From Mobula birostris (lineage: Eukaryota), in the NCBI RefSeq assembly GCF_030028105.1, contig NC_092376.1, positions 53,306,935-53,370,934 of the forward strand: a stretch of DNA of 64,000 nucleotides, in the 5' to 3' direction. Shown piece after piece: positions 33,141 to 56,387 of the stretch. Made by a program: the position numbers and the translations under genes. The notes beneath the pieces are model-generated. The model was given only the letters and a program-made list of their open reading frames with translations. It did not search any database and had not been told where the DNA came from. How positions within the stretch are numbered: the first letter of the stretch is position 1; every line of letters begins with the position of its first letter.

Positions 33141-34689
33141 CCTTATTCCTGGTCTAATTTATCTTTTTCCGTAACTACTTACGACACTACTTCCGTAGAG
33201 ACTCATTCCACCGAGATGCAGCACAGAACGTCACAGGAAGTCATTCCTGCCTGTGGCCATCAAACTTTACGACTCCTCCCTCGGAGGGTCAGACACCCTG
33301 AGCCAATAGGCTGGACCTGGACTTATTTCATAATTTACTGGCATAATTTACATATTACTATTTAACTAGTTATTGTTCTATTACTATTTATTATTTATGG
33401 TGCAACTGTAACGAAAACCAATTTCCCCCAGGATCAATAAAGTATGAATATGAAATATATGGAGTTATGGTCACCATCTCCGTAATGCTCCCCCAAGACA
33501 ATCCCTTCAACTGACCTACTACATTCCCCCAAGACGGGGTCCAGTAATGTTCCATCCCTCATCGGTCTATCTACATGCAACTTCAAAAAATCTCTCCTGG
33601 AATTCACTTCCAAATCCCACTCTTTTATGCCAAGGCACTCACAGTTAGTACGAAGATTTTAATTTCTCAAATACTATATAACAATTTTAATCATATTTCT
33701 CTGTCTGTTCCTCACGTACCTGCTATGTATTAGCAACTCTGGTCAAAATTATTTTTATTTTTCATGTTGTATACTCTTTGGAAATATATATCCAGCTCTA
33801 AGCTCCCTCTGCTCCTAAGCATTTTCCAATGCCATTTCATTTCAACGTCACACAGAAATACATGTCCTGGCGCATCTCCAAGTTAAAGCTTTGCACGAAT
33901 TAAACTCTGCGTGCACACCTAAGACAAGTACTTGCAACAAAAAGTAGGATTGGTTGGACAAGTGCAAGAATAGACTGTAGCATCAGCAAAGTGTCGAAAT
34001 AGGCAAAAATATTCCTTCCTTGACCCACAGCGTTGTTTCCAGTAAAAAGAAAACGCGGATGGAATGGATCGATAGACAATACTGAGAAACATATTGTGAA
34101 AGATTAAAAAGCAATAAAATGCACAATTCTGAAAAGATACAAGGACCTCTGCAAGGATACAAAAACAAGAAAGTTATAATGAATGCTATACGACCCGGGA
34201 ATTGCATCAATACTGGGCACCACAGCTTAAACAAAACGATTTTAAAAGGACACAGAAGAGATTTACTAAATCGGTTTCAAGGACGGGGGGCGGGGGGTGG
34301 ATTTGTAGAAACACTGAACCAGTTCACCTTGGATCCGAAAAAGTTATGAGAGGGTCCAAAAGACTACTGATAAACAATGCAAAGTTTTGACAGACCAGAT
34401 CAATATAAAAGTTTCTCATTGGCAGAAGGGTCAAAATCTGGAAACATTGAATTAAAATGAAGGCAAAAGAACCACAAGTGTCAAGAGAAAAATTTTTTCT
34501 CTACATACAGCAAGTGCTCGTACAACGAAAGATTCAATCAAAATGTTCAAATCCGAAAGAAAAGTAGGACTATAGATATGGGCCACAGACCAGATTTTTC
34601 TTGCGTAAAACAGTTGAATCCATCCATGCTATAACTTTTCTGTGATTTAATTTAACATTATACTACTGAAAGGGACTGTAAAATATCCG

Positions 34690-36210
34690 GCATTAAAGCA
34701 CGTGAAGCGGATTCGCCTCCACTGAAGTTAACACAACAGCCCGTCACTAATCCCGGGAGAAAGGACCCCGTTGGATCGCTGAGCACAGTGGGTGAAGCTC
34801 CTTGAGCTCAGTGCTAACCTACCCCGCCGTTTCCATGACGTTCTGCGTCTCCACGGGGCAAATCTCCGCACTACCGCGTTATGGGTGGTAACTAACTCCA
34901 CAGCTCACCGAACTGGGAGGCAGGAGCTGGCGGGCCGGGCGATCAGCTCAAGCCCGCCCGGTTGGCAACAAACAGCGTCCACAGTTACCCCACACGGCAA
35001 CGGCCCAGCAGAGCGGAAGTGACGCATCGCCGAGAAAGGGAACGTCATTGCGCCGCGGTAAACTACGCGCTCTGTTGTCAGCGGCCGCGAGGGGAGTCGG
35101 CGACGGCGCTGCCCTCCCCTCCCCTCCCCGGCGAGCGAGATAAGGGACCGCGGGGCGCGATACGTGGTAACTACTCGCAGTCGCTCTGACGGGAGTGCTG
35201 CAGCCGTTGGTCAGCGCGTGTGGTGACGGTCAGATGTACAGAATAATATTGCTCTGGGCTCCAACTCCGCTCCTGTGGCGAAACCTGCGCTTGGCGGTGG
35301 CATCCCAGATGGGGAAATGTCTTCCCCTTGGGCAGTGATTTGTTTGCAGGGGGGTGACAATTACCAGCGGCCGCTCTCTGCTGCCGTGGGTTATTTCAGT
35401 CTACAGGGTCAATGCAGCCTATGTCAGGCCTGCCACTCAATGCGCTTGTCTCAGCAGCGCCCCGGTTGCAACCCTCGCTCCCCCTACAGTGCGCGCTGTC
35501 GGGCAGTGGCTGCGCCGACCTTGTCCCTCAGCCCCGGAAGTGATCGCAGTGTCGTTGTTGGAGTCGCCGAGACCGAACTGTAGAGGCAACGCGGGGAGCG
35601 GATAAACGCCGCGTGTTCCCGGCTGCCCGGAGCGGCGGGGTGACAGGTGCAGCCGCGATCTCACCGTCCGACCCACCGTTTGGCTGTCGCCCGCTATCCT
35701 TCCGTCGGCTGTTTTCCATGATTCCGGCCCGGATGTCCCCTCTGGGCTGATGAGTTAGTCGATGCTTCCCCCGAGGCGGCGGGTCGGGTTCTGACAGCAG
35801 AGCGTCTGGTTCGGAGCCTCGTCATGTCCTCTCACTGCCCGGCCCGGGCCAGCCCAGCCCGCCCTCTCACTCGGTGGTCTGCTCCGGGAGCCTATTGAGT
35901 GTTGGTTATGGGGGAGGGGTGTATCCGCTGCGCGATGGGATCACGTAGCGAAAAGGCGATTTCTTTGTCAGACCCGGCCCCAAACGCCCGAAACCCACTC
36001 CTTTCTTGTCCAGTATTAGAGTGGCCCGGTGGCTACTCGGAAGTTCGTGTCGGGGGTCGGTTATGTTGCCCAGTAACTACTGGAGCTTTAAGTCTTCAGT
36101 TAGACATCCTGGAAGCGATGCAGAGCGAAATCTTATTGGAACTTTGTTTTCCGATCTGAATCTAGGTCATGCACTCATTCAGGATGGCCGCCGAATGTGA
36201 AATAATTTAT
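34690..36210. promoter_or_regulatory. CpG-island, apparently bidirectional promoter, copy 1
   Basis: Abrupt GC/CpG-rich block; ETS-CRE composite CGGAAGTGACGCA at 35014-35026; second CCGGAAGTG near 35534; RFX X-box-like half sites GGCAAC/GTTACC at 34961-35001. Confidence 0.8.
34909..35000 (-). other. DYNC2H1: Probable non-coding first exon of DYNC2H1 (5' end uncertain)
   Basis: Minus-strand donor TCG|GTGAGC at 34908 inside the nearest CpG island; the ATG exon has its own acceptor, so an upstream exon is required. Confidence 0.6.
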
Positions 36211-36740
36211 CCTAAAACAACTTCCATTCTCAATCACACGGTAATTGTGAGGCATTGGAGTGGATACAGCTTGTCAAAGCTCCGTTCAGGCGGCAGCTCC
36301 TGGTGGGATCTAGTGCCTTCACTTCACCAATTACAAATTGTGCAGTTAATCGCTAAGCGTTTATCATAAGATTTAGTATTCTGGATATTGCTGGCGAAGC
36401 TTTCAGGGAATTTAATTTCTTGTCGAATTCAACCATTTTATTCGTGGCGTAGATAGTTTATATATGTAACAATATTAGTCGAAGAGTCCATGAGTTATCA
36501 TTTCAAAGGCAGTCAAATTAACCAGAGTCTTTTTTTAAACTAGTGTCATTTCCCTTCTGTCCTCTTTCTGCTTCTGCGCTCACGATTTGCTCTGCTGCAT
36601 TCGAAACGAAAACGTAACTAGGCCGGAGGTTATATAATGCATCTCTTATATCATTACATGCAGATGTTGTTAAATATTACAGGTGAGAATTTGTACACAA
36701 ATAACCGTGTTTAACGCCATTTCATTGTAATGTTTTCTAG

Positions 36741-36793
36741 TGAGACTGACTCATACTGGCAGACTATTAGATATCTCGCCATTCAATTGACCG
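36741..36793 (+). other. Small internal exon of the plus-strand transcript, copy 1 (53 nt)
   Basis: ttttctag|TGAGACTGACTCATAC...GACCG|gtaagt; both splice sites conserved in all three diverged copies. Confidence 0.7.
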
Positions 36794-37029
36794 GTAAGTG
36801 TTGGATTTGTGGTTAATTGGGCCACCGGTTAATCGGGGATCCGCTTATTTGGGACAATTCTAAAAGAACGAAAACTTATCGGAAAAATGGCTGGGATTTC
36901 CGTTGTTTATTTGGGGACTATGCCAGTAAATTCGGAGAGGAGACTAGTTTCTAACTAGCGTCAGTAGTGTGCAAGGGTGGATGTTAGACACTACACCGCG
37001 ACAGAGCAAACAGCTTTTTTTTTAAATAG

Positions 37030-37245
37030 AAACACTAGAAAATATACAGATGCTGGAAATCCAAAGGATCACACACAAAATGGTGGAGGAACTCAGCCAG
37101 CATGGCAGTCTCCATAGAGAAGAGTAAACGGTCGACATTTGGGGCCAAGACCTATCCTGATGAAGGGTCTCCTCCTGAAGCCTCGACTGTTTACTATTTT
37201 TTTCATCAGTGCTGCCTAGCCTGCTGAGTTCCTCCAGCGTTTTGA
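37030..37245. mobile_element. Palindromic Penelope-terminal-repeat-derived element in the Tigger 5' region (copy 1 only)
   Basis: caaaatggtggaggaactcagc...gctgagttcctccagcgttttg; same family as 7045-7140, 47925-48030 and 58885-59045. Confidence 0.7.
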
Positions 37246-37383
37246 GTTTTTAAATGGCTTCAATTGTATGGCCTGGCATTATGTTATCTATGTGGACTGA
37301 CAGACGTTGATTCAAAAACAGTGATTTTTTTTTTGATCATTTTGTTTGTTTAATGTCTAAAAAAATTTCAGACCCTTGCCAAG

Positions 37384-38901
37384 ATGCCAAGAAAAGATTT
37401 GACCCTGGCCGAAAAAATTACGGTACTGGACCAGATTAAAAGCCATCCGCCTAACACCACTCATCGTCAGCTGGCAGTGATAACTGGAGTGCCAAAATCT
37501 ACAATTGCACGCTTGATACAACAGCAAGATAAACTGCGAGAAGAATGGGCATTATGTGAGGGACAGCAGGGAACATCCCAAAAACGAAAGCGTGAAGGTA
37601 AGAATCCAGATGTTGAAAAGGCCCTCAATCAATGGTTTTCCGTGGTAACCGGACGAGGTGTGAGAGTCAGTGGACCAATGTTAAAAAACAAATCAGAGGA
37701 GTTGGCTAAGAAGCTGGGCCACAGAGATTTTAAAGCAACAGATGGTTGGTTATCTCGCTGGAAGTGTAGGCATCACATTCAATTCAAGAAAACACATGGA
37801 GAGAAAAGTGGTTCTGATGCTTTAAATGCAGAGGCATGGAAATCTACAAAACTGCCAGACTTGCTTCAAAAATTTTGTGCAGATGATATCTACAATGCTG
37901 ACGAAACGGGCCTTTTTTATCGTGCCATACTATCAGGTACAAAGAAAGCAATAGATCGCATAACGGTCTTGTGTTGTTCAAATATGTCGGGGACTGATAA
38001 AAAGAAACTGTTGGTTATTGGAAAAAGTGTTAAGCCTCGGTGCTTTAAGGGGCTAAGAATGGATAGTTTACCAATCGAATACTATGCTAATAAGAATGCG
38101 TGGATGACTTCTGACATTTTTAAGAATTGGCTGATGAGTTGGGATATGGAGCTACAGCGGAAATCAAGAAAAGTTCTTCTCCTTGTTGACAATTGTGCAG
38201 CATACCCTAATGTAGAATGTTTGAAAAACATTCAGCTGGAATTTCTGCCTGCCAGTAGAACATACTTGGTACAGCCAATGGACATGGGGATCATAAAAAA
38301 ATTAAAGACACTGTATCGCAGAAAATTGGTGAACCACATTCTTGAAGCAATTGAAGAAAATCTACTGACATCTTCTGCAACAGCCAAGGAAGTGTGTGCA
38401 AGGGTTAATCTTTTACATGCAATACAGTTTGTCACTGATAGTTGGCGAGAAATAAGCAGTAAAACAATTCAGAACTGTTTTGCTCTTTGCGGTTTCAAGC
38501 ATTCAGGCTTTGAGATGACAGAAATGGCCGGGAGTGAAAATGAAACGATTTCAGTACTTGAGCAAGTTGGAAACTGTGAAGAATTTGAAGGTATCAACAA
38601 TCATCTTGAATGTTACAATGAAAATGAAGATTTGGAGGATGCAATCGTTGAAAGCATTGTATCAATACACCAAGGCAGGAAATATGAAGATGAGGAAAGT
38701 GATCAAGATGACACATCTGAACCTGAGCTAGTGACTACACAGGATGCCAGGAAATTCATTGTGGGATTACAACGCTATTTCATGCAGGAAGGCAATGAAG
38801 GCAGTCCACTATCTGCACTAAGTGTCTGTGCTGATTTTGTTCACTTACAGTCAATCAAAAGAAAACGGCTGCGTACACTAGACGAATTTCTCCGTCGATG
38901 A
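37384..38901 (+). CDS. pogo/Tigger transposase-derived protein (TIGD4/6/CENP-B-like), copy 1, 505 aa
   Basis: Open ORF: N-terminal HTH (LTLAEKITVL...GVPKSTIARLI), CENP-B HTH (FKATDGWLSRWKCRH), DDE_1 domain NADETG / LVDN / QPMD (DD30D), acidic tail; acceptor tttcag at 37371 and gccaagATG context. Confidence 0.9.
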   Translation: MPRKDLTLAEKITVLDQIKSHPPNTTHRQLAVITGVPKSTIARLIQQQDKLREEWALCEGQQGTSQKRKREGKNPDVEKALNQWFSVVTGRGVRVSGPMLKNKSEELAKKLGHRDFKATDGWLSRWKCRHHIQFKKTHGEKSGSDALNAEAWKSTKLPDLLQKFCADDIYNADETGLFYRAILSGTKKAIDRITVLCCSNMSGTDKKKLLVIGKSVKPRCFKGLRMDSLPIEYYANKNAWMTSDIFKNWLMSWDMELQRKSRKVLLLVDNCAAYPNVECLKNIQLEFLPASRTYLVQPMDMGIIKKLKTLYRRKLVNHILEAIEENLLTSSATAKEVCARVNLLHAIQFVTDSWREISSKTIQNCFALCGFKHSGFEMTEMAGSENETISVLEQVGNCEEFEGINNHLECYNENEDLEDAIVESIVSIHQGRKYEDEESDQDDTSEPELVTTQDARKFIVGLQRYFMQEGNEGSPLSALSVCADFVHLQSIKRKRLRTLDEFLRR

Positions 38902-39535
38902 CTATTAGGAACTAATACAGTTTTATTGTACTGTAGTTGTATTGCTAGTGTTCTAATTTGTTCTGTATTTCATTTAAATACATAATTTGTTACTCAGTTA
39001 AAAAGTAGTTTGTCTTTTTATATCTTTTTAAATAGTTCCATGAAACTTCGGCATAATTGGGCCAAAATGTGCACCAATTGACCAGACTCCACTATATTAC
39101 CATTTTAATAGTTTGCCCACTGACTTAATTAGGTCAATAATTGTGAATAGTTGAAAATATTATAATGGAATATTCATTTAACACATTTTATAATTAGAGA
39201 CATTTCATTTTCTAGTGGTCTGCACAATTTTTGGATGGGTGAGAGTTGTTTCCTGAACACTGGTAATTCGACAAAAACAGAAGCTTAACTGAGGTGAGAT
39301 GTAGGAATCAAATATCTAGTGTCATTAGTCTGTTCCTGTATTATGTTAATTTTTTCAAATTTATTGCCTTAAGCATACCTACACAGGTATATTAGTTTTA
39401 TTTTGTGGCAGTAGCACTGTACATTACGATTAATATTTATGTTGTAGTGGAAGGTCCCAGTTAATTGTGTTTTATAGTAAAGCATACGTATACATAATTC
39501 GTGATCTATAATTTTACTGTGCTGTAAATATAGTA

Positions 39536-40302
39536 GACACTGCTCAATTTGGGCAGCACTTAAAGAACAAAAACTAATCAAGAAAATAGCTGGGATTTCC
39601 CTGCATTTATTTGGGACACTATACCACTTAATTAGCACAAGAGGCTGTTGCTGAATGGTTTCTAACTAGCATCAATCGCGTGTTATGTATGGCTGTTAGA
39701 CACTATACTGTGCTTAGAATAAAGTTGCGTGTGCTTGTGATCAAAAAGCAGTGATTTTTGGCGCTGATAGCTGGTGAGAAGTAAGCAGTAGGATAATTCA
39801 GAATTGTTTTGTTCACTACGATTTCAAGCATTCAGGCTTGAACGTGCCAGAAATGGCCAGCAGTTAAAGAGGAACAATATCTGGTCTTCAACGAGTTAGA
39901 AGCTACAAAGAATTCGGAGGTATCGACAATCATCTTGAACGTTACAATTAAAATGAAGATTTGTAGGATGCAATCGTCTAAAGCACTGTTTAAAGGCAAT
40001 CCATTATCTACATTGGGTATCTGTGTTGATTTTGTTCATTTGCAGTCAATCAAAAGAACTCGGCAGCGTGCACTCAATGAGTTCCTCTGTTGATTATTGG
40101 GAACTAGTATAGTTTTATAGTATCCTATTAGTATTTGTATTCTAATTTGTTCCATAATTCATTTAAATACATTATTTGTTACTCAGTTAAATGGTAGTTT
40201 GTTTTTATTTTGTACCTTTTTAACTCTATGAAACTTCAGCTAATTGGGACAACCACTAAATTGAGCAAAAATGTACTGGTCCCAATTAACTGGAATCCAC
40301 TG
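39536..40302 (+). mobile_element. Non-autonomous internal-deletion derivative of the same Tigger family
   Basis: Matches the 5' UTR and 3' ORF end of the Tigger gene; ends cccaattaactggaatccactg+TA; left end lost. Confidence 0.85.
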
Positions 40303-40360
40303 TATACAGATGTTGGTTGGGGGAAAGAAACAGGTTCATTTGAGGTTCCACAAGTTGTGA

Positions 40361-40438
40361 TTTCCCTTTTGTCTCTTTCACCACAGCTTGCAATAATTTC
40401 TTCCCAGAACTGAGATTCATCACTGGGTTTGCAAATTC
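40361..40438 (-). pseudogene. Truncated duplicate of DYNC2H1 coding exon 4, followed by a duplicate of the adjacent intron (to ~41520)
   Basis: ag|GICKPSDESQFWEEIIASCGERDKRE vs GILEPSDEFQFWAEVAASSGETAKRE; 40440-41520 aligns to ~5925-7020. Confidence 0.9.
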
Positions 40439-41596
40439 CTTCCAAAACATAAATAAAATGTATGGTATAATGCATGGTATTAAGTCACATTTCACATGTT
40501 CAAAAGAATCGAAACTGGCACAAAGCTGGAAACTTGCAGATTATATTATTTGAACCAAAAAACAAATGTGAATCAATCTTTTTGTGAACATAATTTTGTT
40601 TTGTATTAATCCTAAAGTTGAACTCATCTTCCTATTGGATCTCCTACATTTGAAAACCTCTTTGTAGTCTGTCCCTCCCCAGGCATAAGAGACATACAAT
40701 ATAGCAAATGGTTGTGGAAAGCTGGAGGATTTGGAAGCTATTAAAAGCCTACAGAAGGCAACTTAAAGCAATAAGCAAGGAATGGATGAAATGTGAAGGT
40801 AAGCTAGCCAATATAAGAGGACAATAAAAGATTTTTTAGGCGTATATGAAGAGTAAAAGTTATACAGGAGTGGACATCAGACTGCTGAAAAATGATGCAG
40901 GAGAGCTCGTAATGGGGAGCAAAGAAATAACAAACTGAATAAGTATTTTATGTCAGTCTTCACTGTGTAAGACTCCAGCAGTATGCCAAAAATTTGATAG
41001 AAGTAAGAAATCCTATTAATAAGGAGAAGGTGCTTGGGAAGCTGAAAGATCTGAAGTCACTTCAATCAGATGGACTACATTCCAGGGTTCTGAACAAGGT
41101 AGCTAAAGAGATTGTGGAGGTATTGGTAATGATCATTCAAAACTCACTAGATTTCTGGAGGACTGAAAATTGCAAATGTCACTCCACTCTAAGAAGAGGG
41201 CCAAAGCACAGTAATTTATAGCTCAGTGTTGGGTAAGATTGTTAGATTCTTTTATTACGAATGAGGTTCACATGTATTCTGAACACACAGTAAAACAGGC
41301 TGAAGTCAGCATGGGTTTCTTAAAGGGAAATCTTGCCTGACGAATCTGTTGGAGTTTTTTTGAGGAAATAATAGGCAGGGTTGACAAAGGAGAGTCAGAG
41401 GATGTTTGTATGGATTCTTAGAAGGCCTTTACAAGGTATCACATTTGAGGGTGTTAAATAAACCCATGGTTTACTGGAAAGATGGTAGCATGGTAGGAGA
41501 TTACCTAAAAACAAAGTGGGAATAAAAGGGGCCTTTTATGGTTGGCTGCTGGTGTTCCACAGCGATCACTGTTGTGTCCACTACCTTTCATGTGTA

Positions 41597-41663
41597 CAGT
41601 AATGTGCAAAAGTCTTAGGCACTGTAGCTATATCTATGTGCTTAAGACTTTTGCATAGTACTG
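41597..41663. mobile_element. Tiny Tc1-type MITE/hairpin
   Basis: cagtaatgtgcaaaagtcttaggcac ... gtgcttaagacttttgcatagtactg. Confidence 0.65.
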
Positions 41664-43639
41664 TCTTTATCAATATGGAATGGAGACAGTTTGTAAATCT
41701 GGCAGGAGCAAAGGATGTTGAGAATGATAAGGGAGGAGCACCACAGGTGTGGTGTGGGACAGGTTGCAGAGAAGGGGTTGGGGGGGGGGGTTGGTGTGGA
41801 TGCAGACACACCTATCCCTAGAACACCAGGCAAGGGCAGTTTTGGGCTGAATATGTAAGAAAGGGTGGACTGGCATTCAAGAAGATCGACCAGGAGGTTC
41901 ACAAGAATGAATCTGGAAATGAAAGGGTTAATATATGAGGTGTGTTGGATGGCTCTGAGCCTGTTCTTGCTGGAGTTGGGAAGAATGAAGGGAGATCTAA
42001 GTGACACCTACTGAGTATTGAAAGGCTTGGATGGAGAGGATGTTGCTAGTAGTGGGGGTGTCTAGGATACAGAAGGTACAGAGTCCTTGATAGTACATAT
42101 CTTGTGCATCATCTTGTCAAAAGCATTCTGAAAATCCAAACAAACAACATCTAGTAACTCTACATTGTCTACCCTGCTTGTTTCTTCCTACAAAAAGTGG
42201 TGGATACAGCTCAGTCCATTTAGGGTAAAGCCTACTCCATCATCGTTGCAGGAAGGCAGCAGCTATCATCAGGGACCCTCACTGCCTGGGTCACGCTCTC
42301 TTCACACTGCTGCCATCGGGACAGAGATACAAGAGCCTCAGGACTCACACCACCAGGTTCAGGAACAGTTATTACTGCTGAAGCATCAGGCTCTTCCCTC
42401 AACTTCATGTGCCACATCATTGAAATGTTTCCACAATCTAGGGCTCTTAATCTCATGTCCACAATTTATTATTTATTTATTATTATTATTTATTTTGTTT
42501 TGTATTTGCATAGTTTGTCTTTTGCACACTGGCTGAACACACAGGTTTGTGTGGTCTCTACTTGATTCTATTATGGTTATTATTCTATTATAGATTTATT
42601 GAGTATGCCACAAGAAAATGAAACTCGGTTGTGAATGGTGACAATAAATTTACTTGAACTTTGAATCATCTGGTGAGATCTCCCTTTAAGGAATCCATGC
42701 TTCTAAATAACTTGAACTCTCATCCTTAATAATGAACTCTGAAATCCTAACAACCACTGAAGTCAGACTAACTGGCCTATAATTTCCTGTCTTTTATCCC
42801 CTCCCTTCTTAAAAGACTGGAGGGACATGGTGACTTTCCAGTCCACTTTAACCATTTCTGACTCTAGTGATTCTCGATAAATCACTAATACTGGGTCCAG
42901 AATCTCTTTAGCTCCTTCTTTCAGAACCTTGGAGTGAAGTAAATCTAATCTAACTGGGTTATCCACCTTCAAACCTTGGAGCTTCCTAAGCATCTTCTCT
43001 GTAATAATTGACTACTCCTGACTCGACTTTCTGGCACGTTGCTAGTCTGTTCCACAGAAATGCAAAAAAAATTAATGTTTGTTTGCCATTTCTTTGTTCC
43101 CCTTTGCTGCAACGCTAGTGGCATTTTGCAGTGGTCCAAAGTCCTCTCTCGCCTCTCTCCTACTCTTCCATTTCAATTTCTTACTAATTTCTTTGTGTAG
43201 GATACTAAGGTTTATACCACTGTGGTGTAGCAAGTTGCAGTAGTGCAGTGTGAATACTTTTGTCTAATGTAGTTTGAGAGGGAGAAGCTAAAATTGGATG
43301 CATTGGTATTACAGGTAACAGCATATACATGAGAGGAGCTGACCAATGTAGATTGGAAGAGGACCCTAGCGAGGATGATAGCAGACCAGTAGTGGCAGGT
43401 CTACCTTCCACTAAATCTGTAAAAACCTCTGATCCTCTTTTATATTATTATCATAAGGACAGAAGTATTCACACTGCATTATCGCGACATACTATACTGT
43501 TGTGATACAACCCATAGCATCCCCTGCAGAGAAATTAGTAAAAAATTGAAATGGAAGAACATGCAAGACATTAAAAAATTAATATTGAAAAATCTAGTAT
43601 TACAGACAAGATTAACTGTCTTCTGTTTTGTAAGCATTG

Positions 43640-44680
43640 CTCATGATTTTATGCAACCTGCTTCAAGCAGGCTTTAATCATACCGTTGCCCAAGAAAAGT
43701 GTGGTTACCTGCCTCAATAACTGTCATCCAGTTGCACTTATATCCACAGTGATGGAAGTGTTTTGAGAGGCTGGTGATGAAATATATAAGCATACATCAG
43801 GATGCTCTTTATCAATTACAGCTCAGCATTAAATACCATCTTCCCTCAAAACCAATCAGTAAACTACCAAGACCTGGGTCTCAAATACCCCCTTGTGCAA
43901 ATGGTTTCTGGATTTCCTCACTTGCAAACCCCAGTCATTTTGGATTGGCAGAACTATCTCCTGCATAATCTCCATCAGCACAAGTGTACCACAGGGGTAT
44001 GTACTTAACCCCCTCCTCTACTCATTTTACACCTATGATTATGTGCCTAAATACAGCTCCAACACCATATTCATGTCTGCTGAGGACACCACTTGTGAGT
44101 AGTGTCATTATAACAGCCTCTCACTCAATGTCAGCAAGACCATAGTACTGATTGTAGACTTCAGGAGAAGGAACCAGAGGTCCATGAGCCAGCCTTCAGA
44201 GGTGGAGAGGGTCAGTAACTTTAAATTCCTGCATGTTACTATCTCAGAGGACCTGTCCTGGACTCATCATATAAGTGTAATTGCAAAGGAAGCATAACAG
44301 CACCTCTACTTCCTTTGGAGTCTGCGGAGATTTGGCATGACATCAAAAACTTCGACAAACTTATATAGATATGTAGTACAAAGTGTATTGACTAGCTGCA
44401 TTACTGCCTGGTATGGGAATACCAATGCCTTTGAACTGAAAATTGTACAAAAGGTGGTGCATTAGGCCCAGTACAACACAGGTAAAGCCATTGAGCACAT
44501 CTACATGAAACACTGTCATAGGAAAGCAGCATCCATCAAAGATCCTCGCCACCCAAGCCATGCTCTTTTCTCACTGCTGCCATCAGGTAGCAGGTACAAG
44601 TGCCTCAAGACTCGCATCACCAAGCTCATGGACAGTTACTACCCCTCAACCATCAGGTCTTGAACTAAAGAGAATAATTA
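43640..44680 (+). mobile_element. Rex1/Babar-like LINE fragment
   Basis: MLFINYSSALNTI, CKWFLDFLT, VPQGYVLNPLLYSFYTYDYV. Confidence 0.75.
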
Positions 44681-46546
44681 CTCTCATCTATTGAGATGTT
44701 CCCACAGCAGATAATTTCACTTTAAGGACTCTGTCTTGTTTTTTTGTATTCTCGTTTTTTTGTATTCTCATTATTTATTCCTATTTATTTATATTTGTAT
44801 TTTCACAGTTTTGTCTTCTATGCTGTACGTGATCTTTCATTGATCTTGTTTACAGTTACTATTATATAGCAGGAAAAAGAACTCAAGGTTGTATGCGGTA
44901 AATACCGATAATAAAATTTACTTTGAACTCAGAGGTTTTTTGTATGTCAGACATACAATTTTTTTCTTTACAGATAATCTTCATTGAGAATTTAAATTAT
45001 TTACCCCAATATAGATTCTCTTATATTTAATTTCACGCAACAACTTTAAACTGTAAATCTTCTCATTTCTCATCATTCAATAAGAATTTTAAATCCCTGT
45101 TCCTTGTCATTACGCTCTTAAACACATTCCCTTCTTTTTAAAACACTTAATAACTTTTACAATCATATTTCTTGTAATTTCCTCAGTTTTAGTGGAAATA
45201 TTTCAATGACCCAACTTTATCTTTAGAACTAAAGTTTCCCATTTTTAGCATTATCTTGTAGTATGTTGTAGATTCAAAATCATATAGCATGGATCTTGAC
45301 CCAAAAAGTCTAAATTCCATTTCCTCTACAGTACTGAGAGGCAGCAACTCTACCAACAGCTCAACTATGCCACTCATTACCCTTATTCCTAGTCTAATTT
45401 ATCTTTTTCCGTAACTACTTTGAAATATATGGAGTTATGGTCACTATATCCATAATGCTCCCCCAAGACAATCCCTTCAACTGACCTACTACATTCCCTG
45501 AGACAGGGCCCATTAATGTTCCATCCCTCATTGGTCTATCTGCATGCAGCTTCAAAAAATCTCTCCTGGAATTCACCTAAAAATTCCACTCTTTTATGCC
45601 AAGCCAATCACGGTTAGTACAAGGGGATTTTAATTTCTCAAATACCATAACAATTGTTAATCACATCTCTCTGCCAGTTGCTCACGTATCTGCAATGCGT
45701 TACCAGCTCATATATACAACTTCATAATAGAATTCTATTCAGTTCTTTTTTGGCGAGTGGCGGCATGGTCTAGGCCGCGAGGCTTTCGCAGTACGACACG
45801 CTGCTTTAGACAATTTAAATACCAGCGCAGACTGGGGACGAGAGCCGATTTCGCTCGCTCTCGGCGATCTTCACTCCTCTCTCCAGTGCGCGCAGCCTTC
45901 CACTGGTCCATTGTTGGGTCAACTTAAATGCCGGGCCAGACAGACTGAAAATACAGGGTGTTGGGACAAGAGTCGATTTCGCTCGTTCTCTGCAGTGGCC
46001 ATCTCCATGGCGCTGAAGCGATGAGGACTGCCCCAGCTGCTGTGCCCGCTAATATGATGAACTGATAAGCAAGAATCAGAGGACTCAATTTTGGTTCAGA
46101 ATGCTATTGTTCACTTCAATTGTTTGCGTAATTTTTTTTCCTTTAACTTATGCATTGAGTGTTTCTTTTTTTTCTTTAATTAGGTTGTTTAAGGTTTCTT
46201 GCTTTGGGGCTACATGTGAGCAAGCAAATCTCAAGGTTGTATAATTTATAAATTCATTGACAATAATTAAATCTTATGTATCCAGCTCCAAGCTCCCTCT
46301 GTTCCAAATCATTTTCCAATACCGTATCATTTAAACTTCACACACAAGTACATTTACACATCTCCAAGTTAAAGCTTCACAAGATCTAAGCACCTTAAAA
46401 CAAGTACTTGTAGCAAAAAGTAGGATTGGTAGGACAAGTTTCAGAGTAGACTGTACAACATTGTAGCGTCAGCTAAGTCTCTAAACAAGCAAAACTATAC
46501 CTTCCTTATGAGTTCACTATTACTGATCTAAGAGAGAAAATACGTA

Positions 46547-46702
46547 TGAGGGGTGATTGATAAGTTTGTGGCCTAAGGTAGAAGGAGATGAGTTATACAG
46601 CTGTCGTTACATGCACATGCAGGTCAACTCTAAGTGATTATGCAGAAAGTTCGAAGTTAATCATCTTCTACCTTAGGCCACGGACTTATCAATCACCCCT
46701 CG
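46547..46702. mobile_element. Mariner-type MITE
   Basis: ~38-bp TIRs gaggggtgattgataagtttgtggcctaaggtagaag / reverse complement; TA TSD. Confidence 0.85.
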
Positions 46703-47124
46703 TAGAATACAAAAACAAAAAAGTCACAATGTATGCCAGTGTCACAACAACCCGAGTATTGCATCAATACTGGGCACCACGGCTTTTTAAAAAGCGGTTC
46801 TAAAAGGATATAGAAGAGATTTACTAAAATTATTTTAAGACGGTGGGCGTGGATTTATGAGAAAAACTGAACCAGTTCACCTTGGATCCGAGGAAGTTAC
46901 AAAGGGATCCAAGAGCTATTTATAAAACATGCAAGGTATTGACAGACCAGATGAAAGCAATCAGAAGTGTCAAGAGGAAAACTATTTCTCTACATACAAG
47001 AAGCGTTCGTGCAACGAGGATTCATTCAACCGAACTGTTCAAATCCGAGCGAGGTAACTATGTGAAAGAAAAGCAAAGCTACAGATAATGGGCTTCAGAG
47101 CGGATTTTTGTTGCGTAAAACAAT

Positions 47125-47580
47125 AGAAAACCATAGGAAAACTACAGCACAGAAACAGGCCTTTTGGCCCTTCTTGGCTGTGCCGAACCATTTTCTGCCT
47201 AGTCCCACTGACCTGCACACGGACCATATCCCTCCATACACCTCCCATCCATGTATCTGTCCAATTTATTCTTAAATGTTGAAAAAGAACCCGCATTTGC
47301 CACCTCATCTGGCAGCTAATTCCATACTCCCACCACTCTCTGTGTGAAGAAGCCTCCCCTAACGTTCCCTTTAAACTTTTCCCCCCCTTACCCTTAACCC
47401 ATGTCCTCTGGTTTTTTTCTCCCCTTGCCTCAGTGGAAAAAGCCTGCTTGCATTCACTCTATCTATACCCATCATATTTTTATATACCTCTATCAAATCT
47501 CACTTCATTCTTCTACGCTCCAGGGAATAAAGTCCTAACCTATTCAACCCTTCTCTGTAACTGAGTTTCTCAAGTCCCGA
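47125..47580 (-). mobile_element. Young-looking CR1 3' end, present in unit 2 only
   Basis: Typical CR1 3' terminus; absent at the homologous position near 34610. Confidence 0.7.
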
Positions 47581-47689
47581 CAATGTTTTTCTTGCGATTC
47601 TTTTTCTTTGAACTTTGATTCATTTGAACGTTAAACTTCTAAAAAGGACAGCAAAATATTGGAATGAAATCCCAGCATCACTCCTTTCG

Positions 47690-49082
47690 GCATTAAAACA
47701 TTTGAAGTTTATCCGCCTCGGCATATGGTAACACAACGGCCCGTCACGGTTCAGCTTGACCCTGTTGGACCGGTGAGCACAGTGGGTGAAACTCACTTTG
47801 GCTCAGTTCAAACCTCGCCGTTTCCATTACGTTCCGCGTCTGGACGAGGAAAATCTCCACAACACCGCATTACAGGTGTAAATAAATTCAAAGCTCACAG
47901 AATTGGGAAACAGGGTTTAAAAACGCAAACAACAGGAATTCTGCAGATGCTGGAAATTCAAACACACATAAAAGTTGCTGGTGAATGCTGCCTGGCCTGC
48001 TGCGTTCACCAGCAACTTTTATGTGTGTTGCTGGGAAGCAGGGTTGGTCAGCGCGTCTGTAGCAGAAAAAAAACGACGGTTGGATGTACAGAATAATATC
48101 ATACTCACAGCGCTGGGCTCCAACTCCGCTCCTGTGGCGCGAGTTCAGCCCGAAACCTGCGCTTGGCGGTGGCATCCCAGATGGGGAAATGTCTTCCCCT
48201 TGGGCAGTGATTTGTTTGCAGGGGGGTGACAATTACCAGCGGCCGCTCTCTGCTGCCGTGGGTTATTTCAGTCTACAGGGTCAATGCAGCCTATGTCAGG
48301 CCTGCCACTCAATGCGCTTGTCTCAGCAGCGCCCCGGTTGCAACCCTCGCTCCCCCTACAGTGCGCGCTGTCGGGCAGTGGCTGCGCCGACCTTGTCCCT
48401 CAGCCCCGGAAGTGATCGCAGTGTCGTTGTTGGAGTCGCCGAGACCGAACTGTAGAGGCAACGCGGGGAGCGGATAAACGCCGCGTGTTCCCGGCTGCCC
48501 GGAGCGGCGGGGTGACAGGTGCAGCCGCGATCTCACCGTCCGACCCACCGTTTGGCTGTCGCCCGCTATCCTTCCGTCGGCTGTTTTCCATGATTCCGGC
48601 CCGGATGTCCCCTCTGGGCTGATGAGTTAGTCGATGCTTCCCCCGAGGCGGCGGGTCGGGTTCTGACAGCAGAGCGTCTGGTTCGGAGCCTCGTCATGTC
48701 CTCTCACTGCCCGGCCCGGGCCAGCCCAGCCCGCCCTCTCACTCGGTGGTCTGCTCCGGGAGCCTATTGAGTGTTGGTTATGGGGGAGGGGTGTATCCGC
48801 TGCGCGATGGGATCACGTAGCGAAAAGGCGATTTCTTTGTCAGACCCGGCCCCAAACGCCCGAAACCCACTCCTTTCTTGTCCAGTATTAGAGTGGCCCG
48901 GTGGCTACTCGGAAGTTCGTGTCGGGGGTCGGTTATGTTGCCCAGTAACTACTGGAGCTTTAAGTCTTCAGTTAGACATCCTGGAAGCGATGCAGAGCGA
49001 AATCTTATTGGAACTTTGTTTTCCGATCTGAATCTAGGTCATGCACTCATTCAGGATGGCCGCCGAATGTGAAATAATTTAT
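47690..49082. promoter_or_regulatory. CpG-island promoter, copy 2 (ETS-CRE core deleted)
   Basis: 48152-49082 matches 35280-36210 at constant offset 12872; the segment equivalent to ~34920-35205 is missing and replaced by a short palindromic repeat. Confidence 0.75.
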
Positions 49083-49616
49083 TCCAAAACGGTGCCCCTT
49101 CTCATTTGGAGCGGATGCAGCTTGTCAAAGGTCCGTTCAGGCGGCAGCTCCTGGTGGGATCTGGTGCCTTCTCTTCACCAATTACAAATTGTGCAGTTAG
49201 TCAACATCGTAGAGTTTATCATAAGATTGAACAGTATTTTGGGGATTGCTGATGAAGCTTTCAGAGAATTCATGTCGAATTCTACTGTTTTGTTTGTCGC
49301 GTTTATATATAAAAAGGAAAATATTGCTCTCAGGGTCTGTGAGTTATTATTTCAAAAGCAGTCAAATGAACCATTGCCTTATTCGCGAATCAATTTAAAT
49401 TCGTATTAGGTCTGTGTTATTTTTCTTGTTTCTTCTTTCTGCTTCTCCGCTCACGATTTGTTCTGCAGCATTCCGTACGAAAACGTAACTAGGCCAGAGT
49501 TTGTATAATACATTTTCTATTTTCGTTTAAGCATGTAGGTGTTGTTTCATAATTATAGGTAAGGGTTTGTACACAGATAGCCGTCTTTAACACTATCTCA
49601 TTGTAATGTTTTCTAG

Positions 49617-49668
49617 TGAGACTGACTCATACTGGAGGACTATCCGATATCTCACCAACAATTGACGG
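49617..49668 (+). other. Small internal exon, copy 2 (52 nt)
   Basis: ttttctag|TGAGACTGACTCATAC...GACGG|gtaaga. Confidence 0.65.
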
Positions 49669-49672
49669 GTAA

Positions 49673-51710
49673 GATTTCCAGTTATTTGGGCCATCGGTTA
49701 ATATCTGGGACAATAACAAAATCTAATCGAGAAATTAGCTGCAACTCTCTTCGTTTATTTGGGCACTATAGCAATTAATTGGGACAGGAGACAGATTGCC
49801 GAACAGTTTCTAACTAGCATCGGTTGCATTCAATGGTGGCTGTTAAGACACTACACCGTGCTTAGAGCGAATAGTTTTTAAATAGCTTCAGTTGTGTGCC
49901 CTTGCGTTATCTAAATGGGCCGACGGACGCTGATTCAAAAAGCAGTGATTTTTGATCATTTTCTTTGTTTAATGTCTAAAAAATTTCAGACCCGTGCCAA
50001 GATGCCAAGAAAAGATTTGACCCTGGCCGAAAAAATTACGGTACTGGACCAGATTAAAAGCCATCCGCCTAACACCACTCATCGTCAGCTGGCAGTGATA
50101 ACTGGAGTGCCAAAATCTACAATTGCACGCTTGATACAACAGCAAGATAAACTGCGAGAAGAATGGGCATTATGTGAGGGACAGCAGGGAACATCCCAAA
50201 AACGAAAGCGTGAAGGTAAGAATCCAGATGTTGAAAAGGCCCTCAATCAATGGTTTTCCGTGGTAACCGGACGAGGTGTGAGAGTCAGTGGACCAATGTT
50301 AAAAAACAAATCAGAGGAGTTGGCTAAGAAGCTGGGCCACAGAGATTTTAAAGCAACAGATGGTTGGTTATCTCGCTGGAAGTGTAGGCATCACATTCAA
50401 TTCAAGAAAACACATGGAGAGAAAAGTGGTTCTGATGCTTTAAATGCAGAGGCATGGAAATCTACAAAACTGCCAGACTTGCTTCAAAAATTTTGTGCAG
50501 ATGATATCTACAATGCTGACGAAACGGGCCTTTTTTATCGTGCCATACTATCAGGTACAAAGAAAGCAATAGATCGCATAACGGTCTTGTGTTGTTCAAA
50601 TATGTCGGGGACTGATAAAAAGAAACTGTTGGTTATTGGAAAAAGTGTTAAGCCTCGGTGCTTTAAGGGGCTAAGAATGGATAGTTTACCAATCGAATAC
50701 TATGCTAATAAGAATGCGTGGATGACTTCTGACATTTTTAAGAATTGGCTGATGAGTTGGGATATGGAGCTACAGCGGAAATCAAGAAAAGTTCTTCTCC
50801 TTGTTGACAATTGTGCAGCATACCCTAATGTAGAATGTTTGAAAAACATTCAGCTGGAATTTCTGCCTGCCAGTAGAACATACTTGGTACAGCCAATGGA
50901 CATGGGGATCATAAAAAAATTAAAGACACTGTATCGCAGAAAGTTGGTTAACCACATTCTTGAAGCAATTGAAGAAAATCTACTGACATCTTCTGCAACA
51001 GCCAAGGAAGTGTGTGCAAGGGTTAACCTTTTACAGGCAATACAGTTTGTCACTGATAGTTGGCGAGAAATAAGCAGTAAAACAATTCAGAACTGTTTTG
51101 CTCTTTGCGGTTTCAAGCATTCAGGCTTTGAGATGACAGAAATGGCCGGGAGTGAAAATGAAACGATTTCAGTCCTTCAGGTTGGGAACTACGACGAATT
51201 TGAAGTTATCGACAATCATCTTGAATGTTACAATGAAAACGAAGATTTGGAGGATGCAATCGTTGAAAGCATTGTATCAATAAACCAAGGTGGGAAATAT
51301 GAAGATGAGGAAAGTGATCAAGATGACACATCTGAACCTGAGCTAGTGACTACACAGGATGCCAGGAAATTCATTGTTGGATTACAACGCTATTTCATGC
51401 AGGAAGGCAATGAAGGCAGTCCACTATCTGCACTAAGTGTCTGTGCTGATTTTGTTCATTTACAGTCAATCAAAAGAAAACGGCTGCGTACACTGGACGA
51501 ATTTCTCCGTCGATGACTATTAGGAACTAATACAGTTTTATTGTACTGTAGTAGTATTGCTAGTGTTCTAATTTGTTCTGTATTTCATTTAAATATATAA
51601 TTAGTTATTCAGTTAAACAGTCATTCGCCTTTTTTATACCTTTTTAACTATTTCCATGAAACCAGCTTAATTTGTCTAACTGTACTGCCCCAATTAACCA
51701 GAATCCACTA
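49673..51710 (+). mobile_element. Full-length Tigger element with damaged TIRs, copy 2
   Basis: Right TIR cccaattaaccagaatccacta then TA; left terminus deleted. Confidence 0.85.
50002..51516 (+). CDS. pogo/Tigger transposase-derived protein, copy 2, 504 aa
   Basis: Same domains; identical to copy 1 for about the first 940 nt; acceptor tttcag at 49989. Confidence 0.9.
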   Translation: MPRKDLTLAEKITVLDQIKSHPPNTTHRQLAVITGVPKSTIARLIQQQDKLREEWALCEGQQGTSQKRKREGKNPDVEKALNQWFSVVTGRGVRVSGPMLKNKSEELAKKLGHRDFKATDGWLSRWKCRHHIQFKKTHGEKSGSDALNAEAWKSTKLPDLLQKFCADDIYNADETGLFYRAILSGTKKAIDRITVLCCSNMSGTDKKKLLVIGKSVKPRCFKGLRMDSLPIEYYANKNAWMTSDIFKNWLMSWDMELQRKSRKVLLLVDNCAAYPNVECLKNIQLEFLPASRTYLVQPMDMGIIKKLKTLYRRKLVNHILEAIEENLLTSSATAKEVCARVNLLQAIQFVTDSWREISSKTIQNCFALCGFKHSGFEMTEMAGSENETISVLQVGNYDEFEVIDNHLECYNENEDLEDAIVESIVSINQGGKYEDEESDQDDTSEPELVTTQDARKFIVGLQRYFMQEGNEGSPLSALSVCADFVHLQSIKRKRLRTLDEFLRR

Positions 51711-52182
51711 TATTGCCATTTTAATAGTTTGCCCCCTGACTTAATTAGGTCAATAATTGTTTATGGTTGAACACATTATAACAGAATATTCATTTACTAC
51801 ATTTTATAATTAGGAATGTTTCATTTTCTAGTGGTCTGCACAATTTTTGAATGGGTGAGGGTTATTTCCTGAATACAGCTAAAAAAAAAACAAGAAGCTT
51901 AGCTACGATAACTGATGTCATAAATCTGTACTTGTACTACGTTAAACTTTTCAAATTTACTGCTGTAAGGCACAGGGCATAAATGCTATGAACATTAGCT
52001 TTTTTGCAGCAGCAGCAGCAGCACCGTACAAGTAATAGTTATATTGTAAAGGAAGGTTCCAGGTAATTCTGAGGTTTGTAATGAACCAGTTAATATTGGC
52101 AGATATATTACTTGTGATCTATTATTGTACTGTGCTGAAGCAAATTGAGTTCCCAGTTCTGCCTGCACATCCATTGGGTATA

Positions 52183-52955
52183 CAGTGAATTTCAATTAAT
52201 CAGGTCATTGTTTAATCTGGCCAGCCACTTATTTGGGACAGCTCTTAAAGAACATTAACTAATCAAGAAAATAGCCAGGATTCCCTTTGTTTATTTGAGA
52301 TAGTATGCTGCTTAATTAACCCAGGAGACTGTTGATGAACAGTTTCCAATTAGCATCAGTCATGTGCACTTGTGTGGCCGTTAGACACTACACTGTGCTG
52401 AGAGCAAACAATTTTGAAATAGCTTCAGTTGCATGTATTTGTGTTCAAAAAGCAATGTTCTTTTGTCACTGGTAGTTGAAAACAAATAAGCAATAAGACA
52501 ATTCAGAACTGTTAAGCTCACTGCAAGTATTCAGGCTTGGAGATACCAAAAATAGCCCAGTGAAAATGAAACAATTAGAAACTATGAAGAATTTTGAAGG
52601 TATCGACAATCATCTTGAATGTTTCAATTAAAATGAAGATTTGGAAGATGTAATCATCAAAAGCACTGTTTAAAAGCAGTCCACTATCTGCACTAGGTGC
52701 CTGCATTCATTTTGTTCATTTATAGTCAATCAAAGAACATCAGTGAACACTGAATGAACTCCTCCGTTGATAACTATTAGCAACTAATACAGTTTTATAG
52801 TTCTCTAATAGTCTTGTTACTGTTCTAATTTATTCTGTATTCTATTTAAATACATAATTTGTTGCTTTTTAAACTATTTCCATAAAACTTTGGCTAATTG
52901 CAGCAGCTGCTTAATTGGACCAAAACGTACTTGTCCTGATGTGATGAGTGCACTG
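52183..52955 (+). mobile_element. Non-autonomous Tigger derivative at the site orthologous to 39536-40302
   Basis: TA+cagtg...cactg+TA; same right flank as the 40302 copy; empty site at 61817-61820. Confidence 0.85.
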
Positions 52956-52994
52956 TATATGGATGCTGTTTGGAAAAAAGATTCATTTGAGGTT

Positions 52995-53056
52995 CTCTTT
53001 TACTTGTTTCACCACTGCTTACAGCAACTTCTGCCCATCACTGAGTTGGAGAATTC
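52995..53056 (-). pseudogene. Second truncated duplicate of DYNC2H1 coding exon 4 with an internal deletion
   Basis: tgtttcaccactgcttacagcaacttctgccca...gagaattcctttcaaaacataaat aligns to ~5845-5940. Confidence 0.85.
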
Positions 53057-55460: not shown

Positions 55461-56387
55461 TACAGTAAAAGAGACAACAGAGTTGATGGGGCAAGATAAT
55501 TTCTTCTGACTGAAATCAATCTCAAGCCATTATCAATGCATAAATATCACCAAAAACGTGATGAGAAATAAGATCATAAGACAGAGGAGAATTAAGCCAT
55601 ATTGCCCAACAAGCCTGCTCCGCCATTCAATCATGGCTGATTTTATTCCCTTTCAACACCATTCTCCTGTCTTCTCCCTTTATGCTTTGCCATCCTTACT
55701 AATCAGGAACATAGCAACCTCAGCTTTAAATATACCCAATGACTTGGCCTCCACAGCCATCTATAGCAATGAATTCCATAGATTCACCAGCTTCTGGCTA
55801 ATGAAATTTCATCTCATCTCTGTTCGAAAGAGACATCCTGTTATACAGAGGCTGTTCACACCTATCCAAGACTCTCCCTCTACTAGAAACATCCTCTCCA
55901 CGTCTACTCTATCCAGGCCTCTCAATATTTGGTAGGTTTCAATGAGACTGTCCTTGTCCTAAACCCAGATCCATCAAATGCTCCTCATATGTTAACCTTT
56001 TCAGCCTCAAGATCATTCTCATAAACCTCCTCTGGACCTTCTCCAATGCCAGCACATACTTTCATGGATTAAGGAGCCCAAAAACTGCTCAAAAAATTCC
56101 ACATGTAACCTTATGAAGATTTATCATTACATCCATGCTTCTATATTCTAGTCATTTCAAAAAGAATGCGAACATTGCATTTGCTTTGCTTACTACCAAC
56201 TCAGCCTGCAAGTTAACCTTCAGGGAGTCCTGCATGAGGACTCTCAAGTCCCTTTGTACCTCCACAGCACTCAATAGAACAGCCCATCACATTTCCCTAG
56301 GAGAAAGGATCTCATTGTACCAGTGGGCAGTGGGTGAAGCTTCCTTTGGCTCAGTTCAAGTTTTAATTGTCACTCACCATATACATA

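Follow-up and report, generated by a model that had tools for sequence, protein, structure and literature searches.

A likely domestication of a Tigger transposase as two tandem genes beside DYNC2H1 in myliobatiform rays

Are two intact Tigger transposase genes that lie next to DYNC2H1 in the ray Mobula birostris recent copies of a mobile element, relics that happen to have stayed open, or genes kept by their host? They are found in a stretch of 64,000 nucleotides (nt) of contig NC_092376.1 (RefSeq assembly GCF_030028105.1, positions 53,306,935 to 53,370,934 of the forward strand), which we call the window and in whose own coordinates all positions are given. A preliminary description of the window had proposed that the two genes are a lineage-specific host gene pair, captured by a promoter and standing head-to-head with DYNC2H1, with which they would probably be co-regulated. 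We consider it likely that a Tigger/pogo transposase was domesticated specifically in the myliobatiform lineage and is now present as two tandem paralogous host genes. The evidence supports a locus in which a Tigger was captured by an orphaned duplicate of a bidirectional promoter with two 5' exons, duplicated, partly homogenised, and kept by selection.

Two intact reading frames at a damaged insertion

Across positions 34000-52500, a search for open reading frames (ORFs) of at least 150 amino acids (aa) returned exactly two, both of which are intact and encode a Tigger (pogo) transposase.

37384-38901, plus strand, ORF and coding sequence of copy 1, 505 aa, matching protein P0001
49915-51516, plus strand, ORF of copy 2; the coding sequence from the homologous ATG (50002-51516) encodes 504 aa, protein P0121

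The 533-aa reading of copy 2 from 49915 was set aside, because its 29 extra codons are intronic and lie upstream of the splice acceptor. Both ORFs encode the DDE_1 (E 1e-45) and HTH_Tnp_Tc5 (E 6e-16) domains that mark a pogo/Tigger transposase, and residues 3-129 align with the CENP-B DNA-binding domain (1hlv, E 1e-10). The two uninterrupted ORFs of 504-505 aa reported in the preliminary description were thus recovered, and every other transposable element ORF in the window is a fragment (DDE_3 of 255 and 188 aa, DDE_Tnp_4 of 230 aa, and zf-RVT of 214 aa), in line with its view that the other autonomous-type elements there are broken.

Self-comparison revealed three tandem units within window positions 5845-61860, and the first two contain the Tigger copies. 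Each Tigger sits at a TA, 13 nt past the donor of an exon of 52-53 nt. Unit 3 is an empty site, in which the donor, 13 nt and the TA (61331-61345) are followed directly by the sequence found after the element in units 1 and 2.

36803-39094, plus strand, immobilised Tigger copy 1, with truncated left terminus and a right terminal inverted repeat (TIR) ending in A, not G; TA at 39095-39096
49674-51710, plus strand, immobilised Tigger copy 2, with the same left truncation and the same terminal G>A
59671-61345, plus strand, unit 3 with CpG island, exon 1 (donor after 60131), exon 2 (61277-61330) and empty TA (61344-61345)
15963-16738, minus strand, deleted relative within a DYNC2H1 intron, used for the family ends
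39547-40252, plus strand, deleted non-autonomous relative, present in both units 1 and 2 but missing in unit 3
52196-52866, plus strand, second copy of the deleted relative, in unit 2

The ends of the family were defined from the three internally deleted relatives, of which two give the left end and two the right end. These relatives are 67-84% identical to the gene copies, and their ends adjoin TA except for one right end beside CA. The left junction of copy 1 is short by 10 nt, with loss of the target-site duplication (TSD) TA and the first four TIR bases, and that of copy 2 lacks six further host bases. At the last base of the right TIR, both copies have A where the relatives have G. Neither copy therefore shows the complete TIRs and TA duplication of a mobile element, and since the ends needed by a cut-and-paste enzyme are damaged identically in both copies, the damage predates their duplication. 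As far as the insertion is concerned, the preliminary description is borne out: the empty site agrees with insertion at a TA about 13 nt past the donor of a small exon downstream of a CpG island, and the lost left terminus and shared G>A are seen against both the relatives and the empty site.

The protein collection yielded 693 matches at E 1e-10 or better. A cluster at 90% identity consists of six proteins, two from this genome, three from Hypanus sabinus (two genes) and one from Mobula hypostoma, and all six, which represent five distinct genes in three species, are intact. Hypanus belongs to the Dasyatidae and Mobula to the Myliobatidae, both of which are Myliobatiformes. The next best match below the cluster is a scorpion protein at 67% identity, followed by proteins of bee, bichir, spider and fluke, and no other annotated protein among the 693 matches falls between 67% and 90%. 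A quick tree of 50 sequences places the five ray proteins together in a single clade of very short branches, beside the scorpion and bee proteins and one Logan-derived protein. Eight diagnostic sites, comprising seven residues and one indel, separate the two window proteins. Hypanus P0124 agrees with copy 2 at 8/8 of them and Hypanus P0125 with copy 1 at 6/8, the one-codon indel included. As the paralogue-specific residues are common across species, both paralogues predate the split of stingrays and the window species. More distant relatives occur at 50-67% identity in scorpion, bee, spiders, aphids, liver fluke and bichir, a patchy spread typical of horizontally moving Tigger lineages.

Four runs of Logan contigs, one each from organisms A-D, were compared with the window at a minimum likeness of 85. 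Contigs that span the right junction (39094/39095) come from organisms B (record 31), C (record 7) and D (record 15), and one across the left junction comes from organism D (record 10), so that the insertion is orthologous in these three organisms, and the same locus is retained in several species, as is expected of a domesticated gene. In all four runs, 38311-39095 stands out by a depth that is 20-90 fold higher and by many joints that skip internal parts, which fits the internally deleted relatives seen in the window; another rise over 36898-37368 is mostly due to an unrelated hairpin (37018-37244). The Tigger family is formerly prolific and now decayed, with the two genes as the exception.

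These data bear on the simplest alternative, that the family is young and still active and that its intact ORFs are recent copies without time to decay. The open ORFs, a retained catalytic triad (described below) and the many non-autonomous copies would agree with such a family. However, both copies occupy the same site in a duplicated flank that is only 70-87% identical, their termini are damaged, and the other members in the window are only 67-84% identical. Moreover, the same insertion junctions are found in three other organisms, both paralogues are present in Hypanus, and none of the other annotated proteins matched lies at 67-90% identity. We therefore regard a young active family as extremely improbable.

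Comparison of copy 1 with copy 2 showed 100% identity over 35277-36163 (promoter) and 37417-38316 (5' ORF). The rest of the ORF is 96-99% identical, with 92% in one 100-nt bin, and the sequence outside, the element's own non-coding parts included, is 70-91% identical. Codons 1-313 are the same in both ORFs; from codon 314 on there are 12 synonymous and 7 nonsynonymous differences and one 3-nt indel, which is the confinement to the 3' part that had been described earlier. Nei-Gojobori counts over alignment columns 312-506 (194 aligned codon pairs) gave 12 synonymous (Sd) and 7 nonsynonymous (Nd) differences, a dS of 0.105, a dN of 0.015 and a dN/dS ratio (omega) of 0.146 (binomial p 8e-5). The ratio, also written Ka/Ks, is thus significantly below 1, as in a stationary domesticated gene.

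A similar pattern is present in Hypanus, where the two paralogues have seven species-specific substitutions in common in the N-terminal two-thirds and only two differences there, and where the C-terminal signature residues track the paralogue, not the species. The conversion pattern thus recurs in a second species, which an assembly artefact would not bring about. The quick tree of whole proteins groups the ray proteins by species and not by paralogue because the N-terminal two-thirds are converted, and orthology was read from the C-terminal signature residues instead. The conversion tracts of the two species end near codons 313-345 (38325-38460), just before 38428, where homology to the high-copy deleted relatives starts.

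The ORF (37371-38457) was also compared with neighbouring non-coding pieces in the other organisms.

Organism C: ORF, 7 differences in 1087 (0.6%); non-coding, 9 in 410 (5 gaps) and 8 in 432 (1 gap), 1.9-2.2%
Organism B: ORF, 12 in 748 (1.6%); non-coding, 14 in 610 (9 gaps) and 4 in 240 (0 gaps), 1.7-2.3%
Organism D: ORF, 41 in 1112 (3.7%), from two records with a 25 nt overlap; non-coding, 43 in 578 (34 gaps), 20 in 348 (18 gaps) and 39 in 573 (2 gaps), 5.7-7.4%

No gap was found in the ORF in organisms B, C and D, and the contrast between ORF and non-coding divergence is clear in organisms C and D. All of the ORF differences in organism C (7/7) are synonymous, and so are 9/12 of the substitutions listed at 37434-38418. 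The three nonsynonymous ones are I182V, the state of the Mobula protein; K281R, that of the Hypanus proteins; and H345Q, that of copy 2. If organism D is Hypanus-like, its 41 nt differences set against 8-11 aa differences over residues 1-358 would correspond to an omega of roughly 0.1.

A second alternative holds that the copies are neutral relics, whose ORFs stayed open by chance, aided by conversion between the copies, with no host function. The tracts of 100% identity over the promoter and the 5' two-thirds of the ORF are in its favour, as are the low substitution rates of elasmobranchs. Outside the converted tract, however, synonymous changes are in excess (12/19, p 8e-5), the changes in organism C are all synonymous, and the ORF is gapless in three organisms whose flanks have up to 34 gaps. 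All six cluster proteins in three species are intact, and conversion alone cannot purge disabling mutations from both copies in several lineages. Neutral relics therefore seem highly unlikely, and selected host genes remain the reading that we prefer. The preliminary description had stated that dN/dS near 1, disrupted orthologues or many dispersed near-identical intact copies would speak against a host gene pair, and it had asked for ORF divergence to be set against that of the UTRs and TIRs. Instead, dN/dS is 0.15 between the paralogues, the Hypanus and Mobula orthologues are intact, no such copies appear among annotated proteins (next match 67%), and the ORF diverged less than the neighbouring non-coding pieces, clearly in organisms C and D and weakly in B. 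Its lineage-specific gene pair gains support from the ray-only 90% cluster, the omega, the shared junctions and a Hypanus isoform described in the next section.

Orphaned promoters and the exon chain

To see how the ORFs could be expressed, the structure of the three units was considered along with DYNC2H1.

34800-36100, no strand, CpG island of unit 1, GC 0.62, CpG observed/expected ratio (o/e) 0.94
48050-48950, no strand, CpG island of unit 2, GC 0.61, o/e 0.91; exon 1 of gene 2 ends at 48518
26544-26843, 16873-17052, 15045-15215, 5774-5950 and 571-723, minus strand, DYNC2H1 exons, joined to unit 1 only
26544-26843, minus strand, the DYNC2H1 exon with the ATG; its ag acceptor lies 10 nt before the ATG
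40362-40454 and 52993-53084, minus strand, truncated DYNC2H1 exon copies from the triplication

The left breakpoint of the unit lies inside a DYNC2H1 coding exon (5845/5846), and its right end falls in intron 2 of the plus-strand gene, some 520 nt from the start of that intron. Positions 5845-7017 are colinear with 40361-41525 (72.6%) and 5846-6083 with 52993-53212 (72.8%), and homology between unit 3 and the other two units breaks off near 61860, 40350 and 52994 (units 3, 1 and 2, respectively). The non-converted flanks are 70-75% identical in all three pairings of the units, which indicates that both duplications are old. Considering this structure, the remainder of DYNC2H1 is continuous with unit 1 alone and only unit 3 can connect to exons downstream of exon 2, so that units 1 and 2 are left with an orphaned promoter and two orphaned non-coding 5' exons. 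The remaining DYNC2H1 5' exons were undetectable in units 2 and 3.

All three CpG islands have a GC content of 0.61-0.63 and a CpG o/e of 0.91-0.94. The DYNC2H1 exon at 16873-17052, the single exon checked, matches PDB 6rla (E 1e-21). The ATG exon (26810-26843 end) lies in AT-rich DNA 8 kilobases (kb) from the CpG island, and the sequence suggests that a non-coding first exon of DYNC2H1 is to be expected upstream, in the island. We presume that the CpG island of unit 1 is a bidirectional promoter, with DYNC2H1 to the left and the Tigger-derived gene 1 to the right; in human, the head-to-head neighbour of DYNC2H1 is presumably DCUN1D5. The head-to-head arrangement proposed for both genes accordingly applies to copy 1, which adjoins the functional 5' end of DYNC2H1, whereas copy 2 adjoins a decayed partial duplicate. 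Likewise, the promoters proposed to have been captured are orphaned duplicates that arose by tandem triplication.

The three units agree at 99% over the promoter and exon 1 (35186-35661, 48151-48533 and 59671-60146), in surroundings of 70-75%, and the identity to unit 3 ends about 15 nt beyond the exon-1 donor. This likeness may reflect either conversion or strong constraint on the shared promoter and first exon. Rfam at gathering thresholds gave no match in the window, so no known RNA gene accounts for the 476-nt block that the three CpG islands share at 99% identity.

The predicted exons are as follows.

35199-35646, plus strand, exon 1 of gene 1, non-coding, donor gt at 35647; the extension of P0122 maps here, in a frame with a stop
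36741-36793, plus strand, exon 2 of gene 1, an ancestral host exon of 53 nt with ag/gt borders that matches P0122 residues 61-73
49617-49668, plus strand, exon 2 of gene 2, 52 nt, ag/gt borders, matching P0122 residues 61-76 at 87.5%
61277-61330, plus strand, exon 2 homologue of unit 3, ag/gt borders
37372-38901, plus strand, exon 3 of gene 1, acceptor cag ending at 37371
49990-51516, plus strand, exon 3 of gene 2, acceptor cag ending at 49989

In both copies the acceptor (ending at 37371 and 49989) precedes by 12 nt a start codon with A at -3, in agreement with the good-context ATG of the preliminary description. P0122 is a 586-aa RefSeq isoform of Hypanus, and its first 82 residues map to the window in three pieces: 35440-35622 (on to the donor at 35646), 36739-36777, and then the 12 nt before the ATG. 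From this mapping, the automatic Hypanus gene model uses exactly the predicted chain of CpG exon, small exon and ORF. The extra residues at the N terminus of P0122 (Hypanus isoform X1) were rejected as a conserved coding region, because a stop is present in the same frame in all three units. The 5' exons are therefore non-coding in the window species.

Contigs of the other organisms were inspected for traces of transcription. Run X2 of organism A has 159 million assembled letters, compared with 2.4-3.3 thousand million in the DNA runs of organism A, which makes a whole-genome DNA run unlikely. In X2, contigs that match the ORF exactly have a depth of 186-231, 5-6 times that of the intron and promoter contigs (32-52). 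Record 17 of X2 has its end at precisely 35646, the next one, record 18, begins at 35617, and the three units are identical until 35658. The unspliced X2 record 20 ends at 37400, 30 past 37370, where the paralogue difference at 37376 would have given 37406. Contigs of organisms C and D (X10 record 2 and X19 record 11) match no further than 37371 and carry 131 and 29 additional letters that do not continue into the intron. As indirect evidence, the contig ends at 35646, 37371 and 37400 agree with branching at the splice sites. No canonical polyadenylation signal was found near either stop codon, and the first AATAAA past copy 1 is at 39718.

The history of the locus can be outlined as follows. 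A tandem triplication copied a segment that extends from within a DYNC2H1 coding exon across the CpG promoter and takes in the first 520 nt or so of intron 2 of the neighbouring gene. Units 1 and 2 thereby retained a promoter with two non-coding 5' exons, and no exons downstream of these. We infer that an autonomous Tigger inserted before the duplication that gave rise to units 1 and 2, in the unit ancestral to both. The element lost its TSD along with the initial bases of its left TIR, and the last base of its right TIR is changed. Transcripts would start in the CpG island and splice from exon 1 to exon 2 and on to the acceptor 12 nt before the ATG, so that a host promoter would drive an otherwise unchanged transposase protein. 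Both ORFs have been kept intact under purifying selection, and their 5' two-thirds have been homogenised by gene conversion.

Catalytic residues and the probable role of the proteins

The putative catalytic residues of 5 ray proteins were aligned with those of 45 other sequences. The triad D173, D269 and D300 is kept in 5/5 ray proteins, with 30 residues between the last two. In the portion of Gao et al. 2020 (PMC7386202) covered here, the corresponding spacing of the Tigger D-D-D motif is given as 29-36 residues, so the ray triad lies within the Tigger range. Just after the first catalytic Asp, an 11-aa deletion is present in 5/5 rays and 0/45 relatives, and position 274, beside the second Asp, is Tyr in 5/5 rays and His in 44/45 relatives. 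An AlphaFold model, with a mean predicted local distance difference test score (pLDDT) of 76, retains the RNase H-like sheet, and the deletion maps to a hairpin loop (residues 183-189) with a pLDDT below 50. The predicted fold resembles those of the Mos1 (Foldseek E 1e-6), SETMAR (3f2k) and Sleeping Beauty transposases.

It is plausible that catalysis was lost in the ray proteins through the 11-aa deletion and His274Tyr. The protein is probably no working transposase, given that the deletion by the first Asp and the change of His to Tyr beside the second occur in every ray copy. It would keep a CENP-B-like paired helix-turn-helix and act as a sequence-specific DNA-binding factor, and its most likely targets would be the many decayed elements of the family that still carry its binding sites.

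A third alternative retains selection and changes the function: the transposase would be immobile but catalytically active, and kept for cutting DNA, either as a trans source for non-autonomous elements or as a nuclease or recombinase recruited by the host. The conserved triad with Tigger-like spacing, the predicted RNase H-like fold similar to Mos1 (Foldseek E 1e-6) and the abundance of potential substrates would all suit such an enzyme. Set against these are the two ray-specific changes, the deletion by the first Asp and the Tyr where 44/45 relatives have His. In addition, the non-autonomous copies in the window are old (67-84%) and none suggests recent mobilisation, and there is no benefit to a stationary copy in mobilising others, so that selection would have to act at the level of the host. 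We consider an active enzyme unlikely. A related proposal, somewhat less doubtful although still improbable to us, is that the pair is an immobile, catalytically competent system kept by the host, in which divided function holds the C-terminal thirds of the paralogues distinct against conversion. If so, the pair would act on thousands of decayed elements, as a network of binding sites or by DNA cutting, and would offer an early-stage, dissectable analogue of SETMAR or of recombinase recruitment in cartilaginous fish.

Several observations weigh against domestication as DNA-binding host genes. The intact DDD triad and the predicted RNase H-like sheet leave room for catalysis. The right TIR and TA are still recognisable, so the locus departs from a strict rule by which a domesticated gene has neither TIR nor TSD. 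Diverged contigs of the 5' ORF exist, about 86-88% identical and gapped (records 13, 21, 26, 27 and 30). The contrast between ORF and flank is weak in organism B, and the dN/dS across species uses partial lists and assumes that organism D is Hypanus-like. With regard to transcription, the RNA nature of the runs is only a guess, and one contig, X2 record 20 (36764-37400), is unspliced. The spliced transcripts anticipated by the preliminary description are accordingly represented by the Hypanus RefSeq isoform, which follows the predicted chain, while no read or contig with the junction 36793>37372 was seen among 15 of 430 joints listed.

Relation to known domesticated transposases and neighbouring elements

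Domestication of pogo/Tigger elements is well documented in mammals and other bony vertebrates. The part of PMC7386202 covered here describes twelve stationary genes derived from pogo in vertebrates, with only pseudogenes of some of them in cartilaginous fishes, dates TIGD4 to the lobe-finned lineage and TIGD6/7 to mammals, and finds the triad unrecognisable in TIGD3, TIGD4 and TIGD5. In the covered part of PMC9219625, Tigger appears in two sharks only, in a context of horizontal transfer. The ray genes resemble TIGD2-7, JRK and JRKL in their origin from a whole Tigger transposase with CENP-B-like/HTH_Tnp_Tc5 and DDE_1 domains, and, as far as that literature was covered, in their length of about 500 aa, their single coding exon and a Ka/Ks well below 1. 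As in JRKL and TIGD2, two paralogues derive from one domestication, to judge from the same source.

In contrast with TIGD2-7, JRK and JRKL, the ray genes have an independent origin, their nearest relatives being transposase-like proteins of scorpion, bee, bichir and fluke at 61-67%. No named vertebrate TIGD was present among the best 120 of 693 matches, and the tree held no TIGD proteins; within those 120 matches, none of TIGD1-7, JRK, JRKL or CENPB is the nearest relative that orthology would imply. The ray genes are known so far only from myliobatiform rays, their right TIR is visible, and a pre-insertion paralogue survives next door. Their intact triad also sets them apart from TIGD3, TIGD4 and TIGD5 as characterised in the consulted portion of PMC7386202. 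With CENP-B and the fission-yeast CENP-B homologues (PMC4231638) they would share the recruitment of a pogo-like transposase as a DNA-binding protein. Unlike CENP-B, they have no added dimerisation domain, retain the triad, and give no evidence of a centromere role.

A further comparison is offered by the similarity of the predicted catalytic-domain fold to that of SETMAR (3f2k). SETMAR is a primate capture of the Hsmar1 mariner transposase. As there, a transposon beside host exons would be expressed by splicing from those exons, one terminus was lost, and thousands of related non-autonomous elements could serve as binding sites. The differences are that the captured ray exons are non-coding in the window species, so no fusion protein results, that the source is pogo/Tigger and not mariner, and that the host part is an orphaned promoter duplicate and not a working gene. 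SETMAR is itself named as a domesticated gene in the covered text of PMC7386202.

In RefSeq the ray genes already have automatic names, either 'tigger transposable element-derived protein 4-like' or '6-like', and the novelty lies in the evidence for selection on them as host genes. The literature on Tigger and domesticated transposases in stingrays, elasmobranchs and Chondrichthyes, within a scope that took in PMC7386202 and PMC9219625 in part, yielded no description of the locus as such. The screen of PMC7386202, as set out in the covered portion, scores any candidate with a one-sided TIR as a transposon, by which the ray locus would be scored as a transposon and excluded. The locus thus exposes a blind spot of screens that discard such candidates. 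The known domestications thus gain a probable further one, independent in origin and so far seen in myliobatiform rays only. The series of events can be read within a single window of 64 kb: unit 3 shows the intron as it was before insertion, the element sits 13 nt past a donor, its termini are damaged, a duplicated and orphaned promoter would feed the ORF, and a later duplication shows concerted evolution.

Other repeats lie within and beside the genes.

37018-37244, no strand, high-copy hairpin (resembling a short interspersed element or a miniature inverted-repeat transposable element), in intron 2 of copy 1 only, absent from copy 2

This hairpin has the highest depth in all four runs and is entered by the organism D contig (record 10), and pieces related to it are found at 7045-7137 and 58888-59037. 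Two inverted Tc1-like transposase fragments, 92% identical, face each other at 56380-57996, with open DDE_3 segments of 188/255 aa.

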